A DNA stretch of 64,000 bases from Macrostomum hystrix (GCA_950097015.1 CATNEN010000012.1:1798001-1862000), one strand, 5' to 3'. Positions 1 to 48,104 are shown, counted from the first letter of the stretch. Notes: generated by a model from the sequence alone, not told the origin. Made by a program: numbers and translations.

Positions 1-335
1 CTATGCTCAGCGAAGGGTGAAGTAAGCACTCGGTGAAGCGCACAGTACTCTCAGACGAGCAGGTGAGATTTTGTAGTCGAAGAAGTGAAAAAAGGAAGCG
101 CAAGGCTAGGCCTGAGCCTAGGAAACGTGATGAACGGCTGTGACATTGTTTTGCTTTCTCGCCTGGTCAGCCTCTTTGAAGCAGGAGGTAGACTTGCGCT
201 GAATCAATGCTAGCCACCGCAATCATCTCAGCTTTGTTTCTGCTTCATTCGAACTGACTCATGTTTGAGCAGTAAATTATAGGCCTTGTGGCCTATGAAA
301 CAAGCGAAATTCGCAACAATGAAAGCAATCGATTA

Positions 336-3421
<3,086 letters not shown>

Positions 3422-38480: not shown

Positions 38481-38821
38481 AGCATCTGAATATTAATCTC
38501 ACTGTTGAAAAAATGTCGTGATAGTTAGGGTAGTTAGTTATTTAAAATTATTAATGTTAATAATTCTGAGCAGTGTTTGCTGGCCGTAGTGAGAGACAGT
38601 CAGGTTAGGAGTGACGGACAATCGTATTAAAAGTGACGGACAATCAGTCAAGGAGTGACAGACAATCAGTCAAGGAGTGACAGACAATCAGTCAAGGAGT
38701 GACAGACAATCAAAGCATCTGAATATTAATCTCACTGTTGAAAAAATGTCGTGATAGTTAGGGTAGTTAGTTATTTAAAATTATTAATGTTAATAATTCT
38801 GAGCAGTGTTTGCTGGCCGTA
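38377..38821. repeat. Tandem duplication of ~212/233 bp
   Basis: 38377-38588 is repeated at 38589-38821, with one extra internal unit in the second copy. Confidence 0.9.
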
Positions 38822-39872: not shown

Positions 39873-42800
39873 ATGCGGCGACTGCTCATATCTGTGAGCT
39901 CTCTGCTCCTAGTGGTGGCTGCGGGACTCGGCAGCGCACAGCAGATTAGCGTCTCGGTCCAGAAAGAGATTGAAGTCCGGTATCAAAATGCGTCCTTCAC
40001 TGGGCTGGAGCTGCTGCTGGTTGACAACAGCACCGACTACAAACTGTTCCGCTTCCTTTCCATCGGCTACGCGCAGCCTCCGATTGGGCAACTTCGCTTC
40101 GCCGAGCCGCAGCCGTTAAGCTTCAGCGATGAGCAGCTGATGATCAATGCCACCGAGCAGCCGCCGGCTTGTCCGTCCGCCGGGGACAGGTCTAACGACT
40201 CCAGTCGGTACTCGGAGGACTGTCTGTACTTGAGCATCCGAGCTGGCGATCTCGAGCGCAGAAGCCCCGTGCTCATTCTTCTAGCCAACTCCGAGGTCGG
40301 CGTCACTGACGGCGACGCGTTTAGCGCCATAAACGACGTTGTCATAGCAACGATCCAGTCTCGCCAGAGCGTCCTCGGATACTTAAAATTAGACGGAATT
40401 GCCGAAAATTTGGGCCTTCGCGATCAGCAACTAGCGATTCTGTTTCTTGACGACGCTCTCGCCAGCTTCGGCGGCGACAGAACTCGAGTGACCCTGGCAG
40501 GGCACGGAGACGCTGCGGCCGCCGCCGGCCTCCTGGCCGTGCTGGCTGGTGGCGCCTTCGGGCGAGTCGCCATGCTCGGCGGCTCCATTGCTTCGCCGCT
40601 GGCCTGGTCCAACTCACTGACTGGGGCGCAGAGCCTGAGCCTTGAGCTGGTGCGACGACTCGACTGCCAGCGGGCGAGCACCGAGGCGTCACTGGACTGC
40701 CTGCGCGGTCTCAGCTCCGAGGAGCTCCTGCTGTCGGCGGTCTCACTCTCACCGGGCGCATTCGTGCCACTCGGCGCTGGCGAGTTTTTCCCGAACGGCA
40801 CAGGCGACCCGCTGGAGCGCTGGAGAGCCGGCGCCTTCGCCGGAGCCCTGCTGACTGGCGCCACCGTCAGTCCCGGAGTAGCGACAGCGCAGGCAGCGCT
40901 GATGGGCCTGCCGTGGGAGGAAGTCAACCAGAGCGTGTTCGACTCGGTGAGACCGGGTTCAATCAGACAACTGATCAAATGAAATGAAAATCAATCAATC
41001 AATCAATCAATCATTAAACTGGTTGATAAATCAATTAATCAGTCAATAATCCGATTAACTGATCAATCAATAAATGGGTTGACAAGTAAATTAATAAATT
41101 AATAAACTGATCAACCAATCAGTTCATGAGCTGATCGATAAAACTGAATATTCAATAATTAAACTAGTAAATCAATAAATCAATTTATCTATCAATCGGC
41201 GGTCGGTGGCATAGTGGTTAATGCGTTTTCCTCTGGCACCAATGTCCCTACGTTCGATTCCGCGGCGAGGCCACATTTATTAGGGGCGCAGGCGCGGAGA
41301 GAAGGCTTGGGGATGCAATTTACTCCCCTTGAGATCCAACCTCCAAGGCACAGTGAGAGTGTACACTGCCTGACAATGAGAAAGTCAGGGCAGATGTACA
41401 TTCCATGTGTGAGCGTATGCCTGCGAACGGTATCTGTGTGCGTGTGTGCTCAGGAGTCAGCGAAATGGGCAGAATTGCCTCTTCGCTGGCTGCGGGCCTA
41501 GTGTCACCAAATGATTATTATTTAACGCAGCTTCGCTTCCATTTTCATGCGCAGGTGATTGGCCGCGAGTTCGCTTACTATCCCAGGCTACACACCGAGT
41601 CCACTGCCTGCGGCCGCGACTTCCTTCGTGTCTCGCTGGCCGACTGGCCGGATCGACGCTACGGCAGCGCCGTTCGGCCCCAGCTGACGGAGGCGATAGG
41701 CGACTATCGTTACACCTGCCCGGTCTGGGAGGCGACCGGCGACCTCCTGGGTGCGTCGGCTGGACCCGCCTACGTCTACCTGGTCAACGTCACGGATCTG
41801 GACGGTCAAGACCACGCAGCCGACGCCTGGTACTTTCTCGGCGAGCCGCTCGTGCGAGAAGGTTATTCAGAGTATCACAGCGACTTGGCCAGGCGTATGA
41901 TGACCGAGCTGCGACTCTTCGTCAACAATGAAGGTCAGATGCTCAGTTGAGTACCTGATCAGCGATCTTTTGCAGATTCCAGATTCGTCGATTCTAATTT
42001 CGCCGATTCCAGATTCGCCGATTCCAGATTCGTCGATTCCAGATTCGTCGATTCCAGATTCTTCGATTCTAATTTCGCCCATTCCAGATTCGTCGATTCC
42101 AGTTTCGCTGATTTCAGATTCGCCTATCAATAAAATCTTGTGAAACCCGCCCTGATTCTCGCAGATCTCGACGCCACCTGGCCAAAAATCGGAGCTAAAG
42201 GATCCGAGTTCAGGTACTACATGGCAACTAATGATTCCTACGATGTCGGCAATAGAGACAACGGCTTCGGTCTGGAGCCTGGCCGCTGTTCGATGTGGAA
42301 GCACGAGCTGCCGTTTCACAGCGCCCAGTGCGGTTCGGACAGCGTAGACTTTGCAGCGAGAGTTGAACCAGCTCCGGCTTCTGCTGGCTGGCCTGCCAAA
42401 CTGGCTGCAGCACCCAGGCCGCAAAACATGGACTACACTGTGCTGAGAGATTTCCCGATCAACGTTATTGGCCTAGGAAATATTGTCGGCCAGACCATAC
42501 TCACAGAGGCGGGTGTCACAATGAGCCAGTTTCTGGGCCTGCCGTATGCCGAGCCTCCGGTGGGAGCCCTTCGGTTCGCCAATCCGGTTGCCAAAAGGAA
42601 TCTAGTCCGTAAGCTGCTCATAGTTTTATTGATATATTAGGCAATTTGATTGGGCAAATGCTTGTCGTGCAATTTAAGCCAACCTTAAGGGACAACCTCC
42701 AAGGCACAATGAGAGTGTACACCGCCTGACGATTAAAAAATCAGGGCAGATGTACACACCTGTGTGAGTGTGTGCTCAGGAGTCAGCCGAATGGGCAGAA

Positions 42801-45800
42801 TTGCCTCCTCGCTGGCTGCGGGTCTACACTCACCAGAGCATTCAATTTCCAGCCGTAAATGTTTTCTTCATTGAATGAAAATTTCCAGGAAGATGTTCGA
42901 CCTGTGAAAGTCCACTCGGGCCCTCACGACCAGACCTTATTCCTTCAGCTTCGGGGGGGCTATTGTTAATAAATCCTCGCCTGACACCTCGCAGATTATG
43001 AAGCCAAGCAGATGCCCCTGCCGTGCATGCAGCGCAGCGAGTACGCACAGGAGATGTCGGAGGACTGTCTATACCTGAACATCTGGACTCCCATCAGCAG
43101 TGAGAGCTCCGAGCGAGACCTTCCAGTTATTGTCTTCCTGCACGGCGGCTTCTTTCAGTTCGACTCCATAGCGGCCTGGAGAGGCCACTGGATGCTGAAC
43201 CAGGCCAAGGTGGTGCTGGTCACCGTTGCCTACCGGCTCGGAGCCTTTGGCTTCCTCTCTCTAGACGACACCTCCGTGCCGGGAAATTTCGGCTTGCGCG
43301 ATCAGGAACTGGCGCTGGCCTGGGTGCGGCGGTACATCTCACGCTTCAGTGGCGCCAGTAATAAGGTCACCCTGATGGGCGTGGAGGCGGGCGCTGTGTC
43401 CGTGACTTACCACATGACCCGGCCCCAGGCCAACTTCCAGCAGGCCGTCATCTTGACAGGATCGGCCTACCTGGACTATCCCGTATCGAATGACACCTCC
43501 AGCGTTCGACTAATTAACAGAGTATTCGCTGAGAATGTGCTCAACTGTGACTCTGCGGACACTCTGGTCTGTCTGAGAGGGCTGAACGCCAGCTTGATCA
43601 ATGAGAAGACGCGTGACTTCAATAGGCTTTATCCCGGTATTGAGTTCCCGCCAGTCATCGACGGGGACTTCATCCGGTCGGACCCGCTGGCCATGGACGC
43701 GTCCCAGTTCGCCAAGCTGCCCGTTCTGGTTGGCGGCGTGGACGGGCCTGGCAACTCGCTGGTTGAGAGACTTCGAATCGGAGAAAACTTCACTCACGAG
43801 CTGTTCCTCAAGGTAAGTATTGGACTCTGTTGGTATCACCCAACTGCTAATATGGACACTAGAAAGCACACTAGAAATCTCTCCCTATTCTCTATTTCCT
43901 AGGAGCTGCTAGAGAGCATCGCTCATTATCCCAGATTTCCACTGGAGCCATCTGGAAAGGTAAAGAAGGCGCTGGAGCTTCACTACGCAGACTACAGTGG
44001 CCGCAATAATTCCGTTCGCGACTCTGAAATTCTGGCCAGAGCCATCAGTAGTCGGCAGTTCACGTGCGCAAATCAGAAGTTTTTGGATGAAATTGCGGTC
44101 GACGACTTGCGACCAGTGTATCACTTCCGATTCGAGGAGAAGTTCGGCTCAGTGGATTTATCCCTGCCCGGTGCCTACCTGTGTGAGTTGCTAACTACCA
44201 TTTTATATTAGCAATCTCTTTGTCCCTTGACAAACAACCTCCGTTTCACCGCTGCACCCTTCCAATTCAGCCCCACTATTTCACACCTACCGCTGCACCC
44301 TTCCAATTCAGCCCCACTATTTCACACCTACCGCTGCACCCTTCCAATTCAGCCCCACTATTTCACACCTACCGCTGCACCCTTCCAATTCAGCCTCACT
44401 ATTTCACACCTACCGCTGCACCCTTCCAATTCAGCCTCACTATTTCACACCTACCACTGCACACCCTTCCAATTCAGCCTCACTATTTCACACCTACCAC
44501 TGCACCCTTCCAATTCAGCCCCAATATTTCACACCTACCGCTGCACCCTTCCAATTCAGCCCCACTATTTCACACCTACCGCTGCACCCTTCCAATTCAG
44601 CCCCAATATTTCACACCTACCGCTGCACCCTTCCAATTCAGCCCCACTATTTCACACCTACCGCTGCACCCTTCCAATTCAGCCCCACTATTTCACACCT
44701 ACCGCTGCACCCTTCCAATTCAGCCTCACTATTTCACACCTACCGCTGCACCCTTCCAATTCAGCCTCACTATTTCACACCTACCGATACACCCTTTCAA
44801 TTCAGCCTCACTATTTCACACCTACCGCTGCACCCTTCCAATTCAGCCCCACTATTTCACACCTACCGCTGCACCCTTCCAATTCAGCCTCACTATTTCA
44901 CACCTACCGATACACCCTTTCAATTCAGCCTCACTATTTCACACCTACCGCTGCACCCTTCCAATTCAGCCCCACTATTTCACACCTACCGCTGCACCCT
45001 TCCAATTCAGCCCCACTATTTCACACCTACCGCTGCACCCTTCCAATTCAGCCCCACTATTTCACACCTACCGATACACCCTTCCAATTCAGCCCCACTA
45101 TTTCACACCTACCGATACACCCTTCCAATTCAGCCCCACTATTTCACACCTACCGCTGCACCCTTCCAATTCAGCCCCACTATTTCACACCTACCGCTGC
45201 ACCCTTCCAATTCAGCCCCACTATTTCACACCTACCGCTGCACCCTTCCAATTCAGCCCCACTATTTCACACCTACCGCTGCACCCCCTTCCAATTCAGC
45301 CCCACTATTTCACACCTACCGCTGCACCCCCTTCCAATTCAGCCCCACTATTTCACACCTACCGCTGCACCCTTCCAATTCAGCCCCACTATTTCACACC
45401 TACCGCAGCACCCCCTTCCAATTCAGCCCCACTATTTCACACCTACTGCTGCACCCCCTTCCAATTCAGCCCCAATATTTCACACCTACCGCTGCACCCT
45501 TCCAATTCAGCCCCACTGTTTCACACCTACCGCTGCACCCTTCCAATTCAGCCCCAATATTTCACACCTACCGCTGCACCCTTCCAATTCAGCCCTACTG
45601 TTTCACACCTACCGCTGCACCCTTCCAATTCAGCCCCACTGTTTCACACCTACCGATACACCCTTCCAATTCAGCCCCACTATTTCACACCTACCGCTGC
45701 ACCCTTCCAATTCAGCCCCACTGTTTCACACCTACCGATACACCCTTCCAATTCAGCCCCACTATTTCACACCTACCGCTGCACCCTTTCAATTCAGCCC

Positions 45801-47030
45801 CACTATTTCACACCTACCGCTGCACCCTTCCAATTCAGCCCCACTATTTCACACCTACCGCTGCACCCCCTTCCAATTCAGCCCCACTATTTCACACCTA
45901 CCGCTGCACCCTTCCAATTCAGCCCCACTATTTCACACCTACCGCTGCACCCTTCCAATTCAGCCCCACTATTTTACACATAGGACCACACCCTTCCGAT
46001 TCAGCCCCTGCTTAACATCTCTGAGATAAATCGATCCGATGAGACTGTACTGTACTAAATACCGTTTTCCTTTCAATCACTGAGCATCTATGATGGACCA
46101 TTTATGTCATCCAAATCTAAAAACCGTTGCGCAGTCTACGACGCATTCTACGCTTTCGGCTTTCCGACATCCTCGAGGATGCCGCACTCGCGCGAGCGAA
46201 TCGAACTATCCAAGACTCTTGTTCAAAGCATCGTGGACTTTGCCAGAAATGGACAGCCCAGCTGGTCCCGACCTTGGCCTCGATATCACCGCGACAGGCG
46301 AGCCACCCTCGCCATGCGTGCTGGCAGCTTGGACCAGCTAGAGCCGACGGCTGAAGTCTTCATGAATCGCGACTGCAACTTCTGGGAATCGGTTCTGCCG
46401 TGCGTCATGACTGGAAACTGCTTCCCCCCGCCCCAGTCGACACCGGGAACGACGGCAACTACACAAGAAGGTATTTCGGGGACAACAGAGCCTACTGGCT
46501 TTACTGAAACGGCTTCAGAAGTGACTACAGATTCAACGACAACCGCTTCTGACATCTCGCCTGGAGCAAATACAACTTCTACGGAGGTCACACCTGGCTC
46601 AAGTACAACTTCTACGGAGGTCACACCTGGCTCAAGTACAACTTCTACGGAGGTCACACCTGGCTCAAGTACAACTTCTTCGAAGGTCACACCTGGCTCA
46701 AGTACAACTTCTACGGAGGTCACACCTGGCTCGACTACAACCTCTTCAAAGGCCACACCTGAATCCACAACAATCGACACGGAAACAGGGACTAAGCCGA
46801 CGGATTCTAAAACTCCACCTACGGGCACAACAACAACAACGACAACAACCACTGCAACAACTGTGACAAGCACATTAGACGTCACGACCAGCCGTCCACC
46901 GATCGGCCCCGAGCCCGCATTCATTGCCGTGGCCGTTGCTGTGCCAATAGTTAGCGTCGGAATTATAGGCTCTGCGGTCTTCGTCATCGTGAAGCTGGCT
47001 TTTCAGGGTCCCACCGTCAGCCCAGTTTGA
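39873..47030 (+). CDS. Type I membrane protein with two tandem non-catalytic carboxylesterase/cholinesterase-like domains, Ser/Thr-rich stalk, TM helix and short PDZ-type tail (~1310 aa)
   Basis: Exons 39873-40946, 41555-41933, 42165-42608, 42995-43812, 43903-44180/44182, ~46085-47030. Signal peptide [22 protein letters not shown]. Carboxylesterase type B motifs occur twice (FLSIGYAQPPIGQLRF / FLGLPYAEPPVGALRF; SEDCLYL twice; NLGLRDQ / NFGLRDQ). Nucleophile elbows read GHGDA and GVEAG, so neither has Ser. TM is FIAVAVAVPIVSVGIIGSAVFVIV and the C-terminus is ...TVSPV. The last junction is not cleanly resolved. Confidence 0.85.
41198..41525 (+). mobile_element. SINE family A, copy 5
   Basis: A box TGGCATAGTGG, B box GTTCGATTCC and ATT tail; lies in intron 1 of the esterase-like gene. 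Confidence 0.9.
41965..42125. repeat. 15-bp minisatellite (GATTCCAGATTCGTC)
   Basis: About 10 units filling intron 2 of the esterase-like gene. Confidence 0.9.
42660..42835 (+). mobile_element. SINE family A, copy 6 (5'-truncated)
   Basis: Body and 3' region only; lies in intron 3 of the esterase-like gene. Confidence 0.8.
44240..45975. repeat. 41-bp minisatellite (CCGCTGCACCCTTCCAATTCAGCCCCACTATTTCACACCTA)
   Basis: About 42 units filling the last intron of the esterase-like gene. Confidence 0.98.
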
Positions 47031-47414: not shown

Positions 47415-47625
47415 AAGACTGGGAGTGACGTTATCCGGTAGAGATCTATTTTTAGAGCCATGGTCGTCTGGCACGTGATGCATGAGACAGGGAGTGACGT
47501 CATCCAGTAGAGATCTATTTTTAGAGCCAAGGTCGTCTGGCACGTGATGCATGAGACAGGGAATGACGTCATCCAGTAGAGATCTATTTTAAGAGCCAAG
47601 GTCGTCTGGCACGTGATGCATTAGA
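47415..47625. repeat. 69-bp tandem triplication with E-box and CRE motifs
   Basis: GAGATCTATTT recurs at 47441, 47510 and 47579. Confidence 0.92.
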
Positions 47626-48104
47626 CGGAGCCTATTCCGATCAAGTAGACGTTCGATGGATTTTAGAAGGAATACTGCATCTTTTATTTAATGTGTGACA
47701 CTATAAAACAAAAAAAAAATTCTGCTATTTAGCAGATCTACCTAATTTCTAACAAATGAGCAGTTCTCCTGCCTCTCTATTGGCCGGGACGTGACTGGCA
47801 TTAGCCGGCTCAACCAATCCAACGGAAATTTAAATCTGTCGCTGAGGTATCTAATAAGCAGCATCTACGGAATCAAAGCCAACAAAATAGATTAATTTGA
47901 TTTCAGATTTCAGTGTTGGGTTTTCAGAATGTCATCGGATTTTAAGTTAAATCGACTCACTTTTTGGTGCTGCACCTTAGCGCTAATACTAACTGAGGGT
48001 AAGTACGTGCTTCTTTGGAACCCCTAGACTAGACTAATTACTGGTTGAAGCCGCAGAATATTTTATCTATAGCTAAGTTGAAAATAAATGAAAATACATC
48101 TTAA

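Follow-up and report, generated by a model that had tools for sequence, protein, structure and literature searches.

A Predicted Membrane Protein with Two Cholinesterase-Fold Domains in the Flatworm Macrostomum hystrix

Gene Structure at the Locus

The gene described here lies on the plus strand at positions 39873-47030 of a window of 64,000 nucleotides (nt) of Macrostomum hystrix DNA (CATNEN010000012.1:1798001-1862000), the window being the whole stretch that was analysed. Its predicted product carries two domains of the cholinesterase (ChE) type, here called A and B, followed by a stalk, a transmembrane helix and a short tail. The exon model was derived from three-frame translation and from the DNA at the exon boundaries, and all searches and alignments of the gene were run with single exons. 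The coding sequence comprises six exons totalling 3888 nt, or 1296 codons, followed by a stop codon that ends at position 47030. The five introns are all of the GT-AG type with consistent phases; the donors read GTGAGA, GTCAGA, GTAAGC, GTAAGT and GTGAGT, and the codons split at the junctions read D, H and F. Every coordinate of the original prediction for this locus, which was made from the DNA alone, is correct in this model, and its junctions 41933/42165 and 42608/42995 are exact; the prediction missed the short exon 5. The exons are listed below with their identities to the M. lignano homologue P0004 (A0A1I8I8B3; 1013 amino acids (aa), N-terminally truncated).

Exon 1, 39873-40946 (+): start codon, signal peptide and core of domain A, including the GHGDA elbow and the deleted HGG loop; based on Pfam COesterase (E = 1e-44, profile 24-322), alignment with butyrylcholinesterase (BChE), hydropathy and a codon check; 60% identity to P0004 residues 3-279.
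Exon 2, 41555-41933 (+): C-terminal half of domain A, where DHAAD preserves the His and YTCPVWEA supplies the third-disulfide Cys; based on Pfam profile 354-472, on hmmalign, which puts QDHAAD at the His column, and on splice sites; 57% identity to P0004 281-408.
Exon 3, the junction exon, 42165-42608 (+): leads from the last part of domain A (WPKIG...GRCSMWKHELP) over a linker of ~45 aa into the beginning of domain B (LGLPYAEPPVGALRF); based on translation in one open frame and Pfam profile 7-50 at the 3' end; 51% identity to P0004 403-532.
Exon 4, 42995-43812 (+): core of domain B, with HGG kept, the GVEAG elbow and the catalytic acid replaced by Pro (DGPG); based on Pfam (E = 4e-66, profile 67-323), BChE alignment and the motif table; 68% identity to P0004 544-788.
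Exon 5, 43903-44182 (+): middle of domain B (FTCANQKF...RPVYHFRFEE...SLPGAYL), with Leu at the catalytic His position; based on frame and splice sites; 56% identity to P0004 789-881.
Exon 6, 46135-47030 including the stop (coding to 47027) (+): end of domain B (YDAFYAFGFP...RDCNFWESVLP), stalk, transmembrane segment and tail; based on Pfam profile 431-515, Tandem Repeats Finder (TRF), hydropathy, composition and the homology of stalk and membrane segment to paralogues on contig C14 of this genome.

Exon 3 joins the two domains. It encodes the last conserved elements of A, including the C-terminal Cys-x-x-W of ChE domains, and the first strand of B in the same frame, and its translation shows no stop, no second signal peptide and no transmembrane segment between them. 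The whole model has a single signal-peptide-like N-terminus and a single transmembrane segment. When 1.84 billion protein representatives were searched with a profile built from the junction exon and its paralogues, P0004 was retrieved; it is collinear with all six exons at 48-68% identity. The exon boundaries abut on P0004, with exons 1 and 2 meeting at residues 279/281, exons 4 and 5 at 788/789, and exons 5 and 6 at 881/883. With the junction spanned in frame by one exon and P0004 collinear, the earlier claim of a single gene running through both domains stands. Two further M. lignano proteins, PAA79323 and PAA79327 (P0003 and P0151), are complete, with signal peptide, A, B, stalk and transmembrane segment. 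The M. lignano GenBank models PAA79323 and PAA79327 come from an RNA-seq-based annotation in which transcripts were cut at trans-splice and poly(A) sites (PMC5730564). Since these RNA-seq-derived models share the layout, they give the architecture transcript-level support by homology. A profile search of the genome found no PF00135 domain in the window beyond the two described, and Pfam searches of ten neighbouring open reading frames (ORFs) gave a kinase fragment only and no esterase.

Fold and Domain Content

The Pfam COesterase profile (PF00135) matches both domains exon by exon, in agreement with the two ChE-like domains originally predicted. The matches cover profile positions 24-322 and 354-472 in domain A and 7-50, 67-323 and 431-515 in domain B. 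The cut-off of 27 bits is exceeded by each of exons 1-4; exon 6 reaches 23 bits, and exon 5 is assigned to domain B through its homology to P0004. The Cys pairs of the three ChE disulfides are present in both domains, as PPAC...SEDC, LDC...LDC and YTC...GRC in A, and as LPC...SEDC, LNC...LVC and FTC...RDC in B. The omega loop, enclosed by the first Cys pair, is reduced in both domains: 16 residues are left in A, and 13 in B. The two domains are only about 29% identical, which marks their duplication as old.

The fold was modelled on the M. lignano homologue P0004 in place of the window protein, using AlphaFold2 with an alignment of 29 rows. In this model the predicted local distance difference test (pLDDT) score is at least 70 for 716 of the 1013 residues, and both domains are predicted to be well folded. 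A Foldseek comparison with BChE gave a target template-modelling (TM) score of 0.82 and E = 9e-39.

Loss of Catalytic Residues

The catalytic positions were read from BChE alignments and from the catalytic columns of a local ChE hidden Markov model (HMM). At the nucleophile position of GESAG, domain A has Gly (GHGDA; codon 40506-40508, GGA) and domain B has Glu (GVEAG; codon 43384-43386, GAG). Both codons had been placed exactly in the original prediction. The acid position is Pro in A (VSPG) and in B (DGPG). The His is retained in A (QDHAAD) and replaced by Leu in B (GAYL-F-YDAFYAFG, across the junction of exons 5 and 6). The oxyanion loop shows the reverse arrangement, the HGG of A having been removed by a deletion of seven residues relative to BChE and that of B being retained; the earlier reading of HGG and His in the two domains agrees with the alignment and the HMM columns at every point. 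The protein as a whole does not fit the definition of an active enzyme. Judged from the residues at these positions, neither domain is able to work as a serine hydrolase.

The single-domain Macrostomum relatives nearest to A and B in this genome have a GLDAG elbow, with Asp in place of the nucleophilic Ser. Four such genes were found:

L006, G000:C41:912921-915434 (L006:421-2934) (+): membrane-anchored; acid Glu and His kept.
L007, G000:C38:33367769-33369751 (L007:1269-3251) (+): membrane-anchored; acid Glu and His kept.
L008:901-2556 (+): acid Glu kept; the stretch covered stops short of the His column and the C-terminus.
L012:1154-2884 (-): acid Glu kept; the stretch covered stops short of the His column and the C-terminus.

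The GLDAG elbow could be part of a triad with an acid nucleophile, or it could be another route of inactivation. The Glu or Asp of the B domains probably descends from the GLDAG state.

Stalk, Membrane Anchor and Tail

The N-terminus is hydrophobic over residues 1-21, as expected of a signal peptide. Domain B is followed by a stalk of 163 aa, 52% of which are Ser or Thr, containing six copies of an 11-aa repeat encoded by a 33-bp repeat at 46560-46761 (TRF). One hydrophobic transmembrane segment, AFIAVAVAVPIVSVGIIGSAVFVIV, precedes a cytoplasmic tail of 12 aa, KLAFQGPTVSPV, and the stop. Hydropathy and composition thus bear out the signal peptide, the Thr/Ser-rich stalk, the single transmembrane segment and the 12-aa tail of the original prediction. 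The ectodomains contain 11 N-glycosylation sequons and the stalk contains one. Together, the signal peptide, the sequons, the Ser/Thr-rich stalk and the transmembrane helix lead us to infer that the protein would be glycosylated and displayed at the cell surface.

A longer tail encoded in a downstream exon was sought with the tails of the paralogues, and the search gave a match to the transmembrane region only. The GT at 47008 would be a poor donor.

The Macrostomum A-B Family

A PF00135 search of this genome revealed clusters of related domains on contig C14 (510-520 kb and 536-560 kb) and on contig C29. All six exons of the window gene find matches in the C14 paralogues, and each domain is closest to the paralogous domains of its own type. 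The best matches of exon 1, the A core, are the C14 domains with a contiguous core, at 31-33% identity; exon 4, the B core, is 45-50% identical to C14 domains whose core is split and 35-40% identical to the other C14 domains. Exon 3 aligns with six junction exons on C14 at 30-42% identity, and a segment that runs from the stalk into the membrane, SRPPIGP...AVFVIVK, is common to the window gene and the C14 paralogues.

The two domains have distinct signatures, which are common to M. lignano P0001, P0003 and P0004. Type A has a GHG elbow and keeps the His, as in GHGDA and QDHAAD of the window gene; the corresponding motifs are GHGTG/PGHVND and GHGIG/SDHQAD in domains 1 and 7 of P0001 and GHGNA/GDHSVD in P0004. 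Type B has a G-x-E/D-A-G elbow, with the acid replaced by Pro and the His by Leu, as in GVEAG, DGPG and GAYLF of the window gene; it reads GVEAG/DRPG/ASLFED in domain 5 of P0001 and GAEAG/DSPG/ASLSDD in domain 2 of P0003. In P0001, a protein of 3380 aa with eight domains, the GHG and G-x-E/D-A-G motifs alternate strictly, in the order A-B-A-B.

A maximum-likelihood tree of the shared core was built from 49 rows with LG+C20 and a careful search, and a quick tree of 122 rows agrees with it; neither contains bona fide neuroligin sequences. Among the Macrostomum sequences, the A clade has support of 97/98 and the B clade of 100/97 in the 49-row tree. The branching order is the same in the two clades: the window gene groups with P0004, P0003 is their sister, and the domains of P0001 fall outside. 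This congruence means that A and B were duplicated together, as one module. The two-domain branch of the tree consists of the window gene and P0003-like genes, including an inverted pair on C29 (L010). A branch with support of 91/88 separates A, B and the single-domain, membrane-anchored Macrostomum genes from all other animals sampled.

The two C29 genes are further two-domain A-B genes, at G000:C29:2608440-2612644 (-) and 2614587-2618554 (+). The tree places the A core (L010) next to domain 1 of M. lignano PAA79323, as its sister.

By its motifs and its place in the tree, the window gene is a two-domain member of an unnamed Macrostomum A-B family that has members with two, four and eight domains. 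The members are:

M. lignano: A0A1I8I8B3, A0A1I8F227, PAA79323/PAA79327 and A0A1I8G704.
This genome: the four- and eight-domain genes on C14 and the C29 pair.

The window gene shares with the rest of the family the A and B signatures, the junction exon, the mucin stalk and the SRPPIGP...AVFVIVK membrane segment, as well as an intron that splits the B core after the motif LGxPYAxPPxGxLRF. It is 30-50% identical to its paralogues, has two domains whereas the C14 genes have four or eight, and has a tail of 12 aa, compared with ~50-90 aa in the C14 genes and P0003. The deletion of the HGG loop of A, found in the window gene, P0004 and P0021, is additional to the family pattern.

The relatives found are all labelled "uncharacterized", "hypothetical" or "COesterase domain-containing", and literature phrase searches returned no description of a tandem ChE-like membrane architecture. 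The original prediction had called the architecture unrecognised. No named family has it, and to that extent the statement holds; the gene is not a singleton, however, since it has a counterpart from M. lignano in UniProt and belongs to a Macrostomum family. The A-B proteins are already present in public databases, unstudied, and they are a new form of non-catalytic ChE-fold surface protein.

Likeness to Neuroligins and Cholinesterases

In neuroligin, gliotactin, neurotactin and the ChE-like domain of thyroglobulin, the enzyme scaffold has been reused for binding and dimerisation. To our knowledge, the non-catalytic ChE-fold proteins that have been studied all carry one such domain per chain. 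The window protein resembles neuroligins, gliotactin, neurotactin and glutactin in having a non-catalytic ChE-fold ectodomain, a stalk that would be O-glycosylated and one transmembrane helix. With neuroligins in particular it shares the Ser-to-Gly elbow of domain A, and its last residues are compatible with a class I PDZ ligand, although paralogues end differently. It differs from them in having two heads instead of one, a very short tail, a truncated omega (Cys) loop and a place in a flatworm-specific clade.

The likeness to acetylcholinesterase (AChE), BChE and carboxylesterases lies in the fold, the three disulfides, the framework motifs SEDCLYLN and GNxGLxDQ and the best matches in the Protein Data Bank. 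Unlike these enzymes, the window protein is tandem and membrane-anchored, with the nucleophile and the acid replaced in both domains, the His of B replaced and the oxyanion loop of A deleted. In sequence comparisons with solved structures, exon 4 scored 127 bits with BChE and 124.5 bits with NLGN4, and exon 1 scored 98.8 bits with BChE and 78 bits with neuroligin. The best structural matches of the P0004 model, by Foldseek, are BChE and AChE. The original description of the protein as "neuroligin-like" is apt for its general design; beyond this, BChE and AChE score as high or higher, and the domains fall in a Macrostomum-only group. As far as these comparisons reach, there is no specific affinity to neuroligins, and the likeness is limited to the general design.

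Two-Domain Proteins of Echinoderms and Hemichordates

Among the best 150 matches there are 47 proteins of at least 700 aa, nearly all with two or more ChE domains. Several of these long proteins have an active GESAG in every domain and may be fusions made by gene predictors. Others are clearly genuine and form a set of ambulacrarian two-domain proteins:

Acanthaster: XP_022079595 and XP_022100211.
Lytechinus: XP_054767789.
Diadema: XP_071500051.
Saccoglossus: XP_006825066.
Glandiceps: XP_077983973.

These proteins, of ~1140-1200 aa and all labelled "uncharacterized", have a signal peptide, two ChE domains, a short stalk, one transmembrane segment and a short tail. In every one of them domain 2 is catalytically dead, its elbow reading G-x-G and its His being replaced by Phe or Gln. 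Domain 1, unlike either domain of the window protein, mostly keeps Ser, acid and His, and the long mucin stalk of the window protein is absent. The tree puts ambulacrarian domains 1 and 2 into separate clades, distinct from those of Macrostomum A and B. An approximately unbiased (AU) test on the 49-row set rejected the grouping of Macrostomum A with ambulacrarian domain 2, a group chosen after the tree had been seen (difference in log-likelihood 51.4, p = 0.0011). The separate clades and this rejection indicate that the double-headed layout arose at least twice.

The ambulacrarian family (P0010, P0038, P0024, P0029, P0047, P0052 and P0005) is conserved and independent of the flatworm family. 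In a four-domain protein of Styela, the third and fourth domains group with ambulacrarian domains 1 and 2.

Repeats and Other Features of the Window

The introns and flanks of the gene contain several repeats, the largest of which occupies the last intron:

Intron 5, 44183-46134 (+): GT...AG, filled by a 41-bp tandem repeat.

The repeat extends from 44248 to 46008, with a period of 41, 42.7 copies and 95% matches (TRF). It is strongly C-rich on the plus strand, with a GC skew of -0.65, and contains spurious ORFs of 587-600 aa. In intron 2, a 15-bp tandem repeat, GATTCCAGATTCGTC, is present in ~10 copies at 41975-42122. A dispersed, SINE-like (short interspersed nuclear element) sequence of ~190 bp occurs in intron 1 (41327-41516) and intron 3 (42683-42842), the copies being 86-87% identical. 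Upstream of the gene, the segment 39016-39270 gives the impression, in translation and as an impression only, of a tRNA- or SINE-like sequence, and a perfect 89-nt direct repeat (38500-38588 and 38733-38821, 233 nt apart) lies ~1 kb before the start codon. A 69-bp tandem repeat with three copies at 95% identity is found at 47416-47626, ~400 bp downstream of the stop.

Farther away, the segment 15980-18770 contains overlapping ORFs of up to 922 aa on both strands, with extreme skews (GC skew 0.39, AT skew 0.69). Pfam gave no match there, and the DNA is probably of low complexity or a tandem repeat. The ORF at 333-1274 (-) contains a short Pkinase fragment (E = 6.6e-9, profile 120-165) and probably represents one exon of a kinase gene nearby.

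Proposed Role and Alternatives

The results above show how the gene is built, which domains it encodes, that the catalytic residues are lost, and where it stands in its family and in the tree. Beyond this, we consider it likely that this intact gene encodes a Macrostomum type I membrane glycoprotein with two cholinesterase-fold heads and a non-enzymatic role in binding or adhesion at the cell surface. By analogy, a role comparable to those of neuroligin, gliotactin and neurotactin is most likely. The A and B heads would be joined by the ~45-aa linker, which is probably flexible, and would be held off the membrane by a heavily O-glycosylated stalk of ~160 aa, so that two non-identical ChE-fold binding surfaces would be presented far from the membrane. 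In its family the A-B module has been duplicated as a whole, and there are members with two, four and eight domains. Of the "bivalent adhesion molecule" that had been predicted, the two dead heads, the stalk and the transmembrane segment are present; the adhesion role comes by analogy.

Several other readings account for parts of these data. Gene predictors often fuse tandem esterase genes, and many database proteins with two to four active GESAG domains may be predictor fusions, so that the window gene might be two adjacent single-domain genes merged in error. This is most improbable, given one exon in which A ends and B starts without a change of frame and with no stop, second signal peptide or transmembrane segment between them, one signal peptide and one transmembrane segment overall, a junction exon conserved in paralogues and in M. 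lignano, and an identical layout in transcript-based M. lignano models. We give only slightly more room to a true neuroligin orthologue, synaptic and neurexin-binding, that gained a second head. The Ser-to-Gly elbow of domain A, the stalk, the transmembrane helix and the C-terminal S-x-V would fit such an origin, but the bit scores of BChE and AChE equal or exceed those of neuroligins for both domains, the top structural matches are BChE and AChE, both domains cluster with Macrostomum-only genes in trees that lack bona fide neuroligins, and the tail has 12 aa where the cytoplasmic domain of a neuroligin has ~100 aa or more. A residual or non-canonical enzyme, in which, for example, the Glu of domain B would act as an acid nucleophile, is just as hard to credit. 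Acid nucleophiles are known in other alpha/beta hydrolases, namely haloalkane dehalogenase and epoxide hydrolase, and the sister single-domain genes combine GLDAG with a retained Glu and His; domain B, however, has Leu for the His and Pro for the acid, domain A has Gly for the nucleophile, Pro for the acid and a deleted oxyanion loop, and the omega loop between the first Cys pair has only 13-16 residues in both domains.

Two further possibilities concern how the heads are used, and we regard both as unlikely, though far less so than the foregoing. ChEs, neuroligins and thyroglobulin all dimerise through a four-helix bundle. It is tempting to imagine A and B joined by that bundle, which is made of alpha3(7,8) and alpha10 and is the canonical means by which ChE-fold proteins dimerise (PMC5943944); one chain would then form a built-in pseudo-heterodimer mimicking the neuroligin dimer. 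The complementary catalytic losses in A and B would then, with the same low probability, reflect specialised halves of one unit. A and B were always duplicated as a pair, with congruent trees and strict alternation in P0001, which favours such a unit, and a linker of ~45 aa is long enough for packing. Against it, the AlphaFold2 model of P0004 has a predicted TM (pTM) score of 0.55 and pLDDT below 50 in the linker (411-481), so that no relative placement of A and B is predicted with confidence; this model says little about packing because ~80 N-terminal residues of A are missing and the alignment held only 29 sequences. Somewhat less likely again is a mucin-type coat protein of the glycocalyx, in which the O-glycosylated stalk would be the functional part, in protection, lubrication or anti-adhesion, and the ChE heads would serve, at the same reduced likelihood, as stable, protease-resistant caps that have no specific partner. 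The high Ser/Thr content of the stalk (52%), its tandem 11-aa repeat, the wide variation in repeat length between paralogues, the very short cytoplasmic tail and the growth of the family to eight-domain giants are all in keeping with a coat. Yet both heads retain all the structural cysteines, and the signatures of A and B have been preserved between species and among paralogues, which argues for constraint on the heads themselves.

Some observations weigh against the binding or adhesion role that we prefer. The searches of the literature by exact phrase, by Macrostomum and esterase and by accession found no paper on the A-B family. The window-gene protein itself is not in the protein collections searched with P0004 as the query, where the matches were P0004, P0021 and one distant esterase, and its transcript support is therefore by homology only. 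The relatives with Asp for Ser that keep Glu and His leave room for some non-canonical chemistry in the wider clade. A tail of 12 aa offers little for signalling, although an alternative 3' exon may lengthen it. The class I PDZ-ligand consensus is S/T-x-hydrophobic, and the S-P-V at the end of the tail fits it; the M. lignano orthologue model ends before its C-terminus. The paralogue tails end in TTHL (C14 genes), GYTG (P0003) and QRHE (P0151), so a PDZ-type end is not conserved. The PDZ-type tail of the original prediction thus agrees with the consensus but is weakened by these differing endings, by the lack of a downstream exon resembling the longer tails and by the mere 12 aa available.

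If A and B do pack together, an obligate single-chain pseudo-heterodimer would introduce a new structural principle among ChE-like adhesion molecules, and the unit would have been multiplied into four- and eight-domain arrays, apparently by a route independent of that taken by the two-domain proteins in echinoderms and hemichordates. As regards the surface protein proposed here, membrane proteins that carry ChE-fold domains in tandem, inactivated in different ways, form a conserved and expanding family in a tractable flatworm genus. M. lignano is amenable to RNA interference, in situ hybridisation and transgenesis, and the two-domain gene, as the simplest member, would be the most practical entry point to the questions of which ligands the heads bind, whether A and B pair within a chain and why the module has been multiplied.

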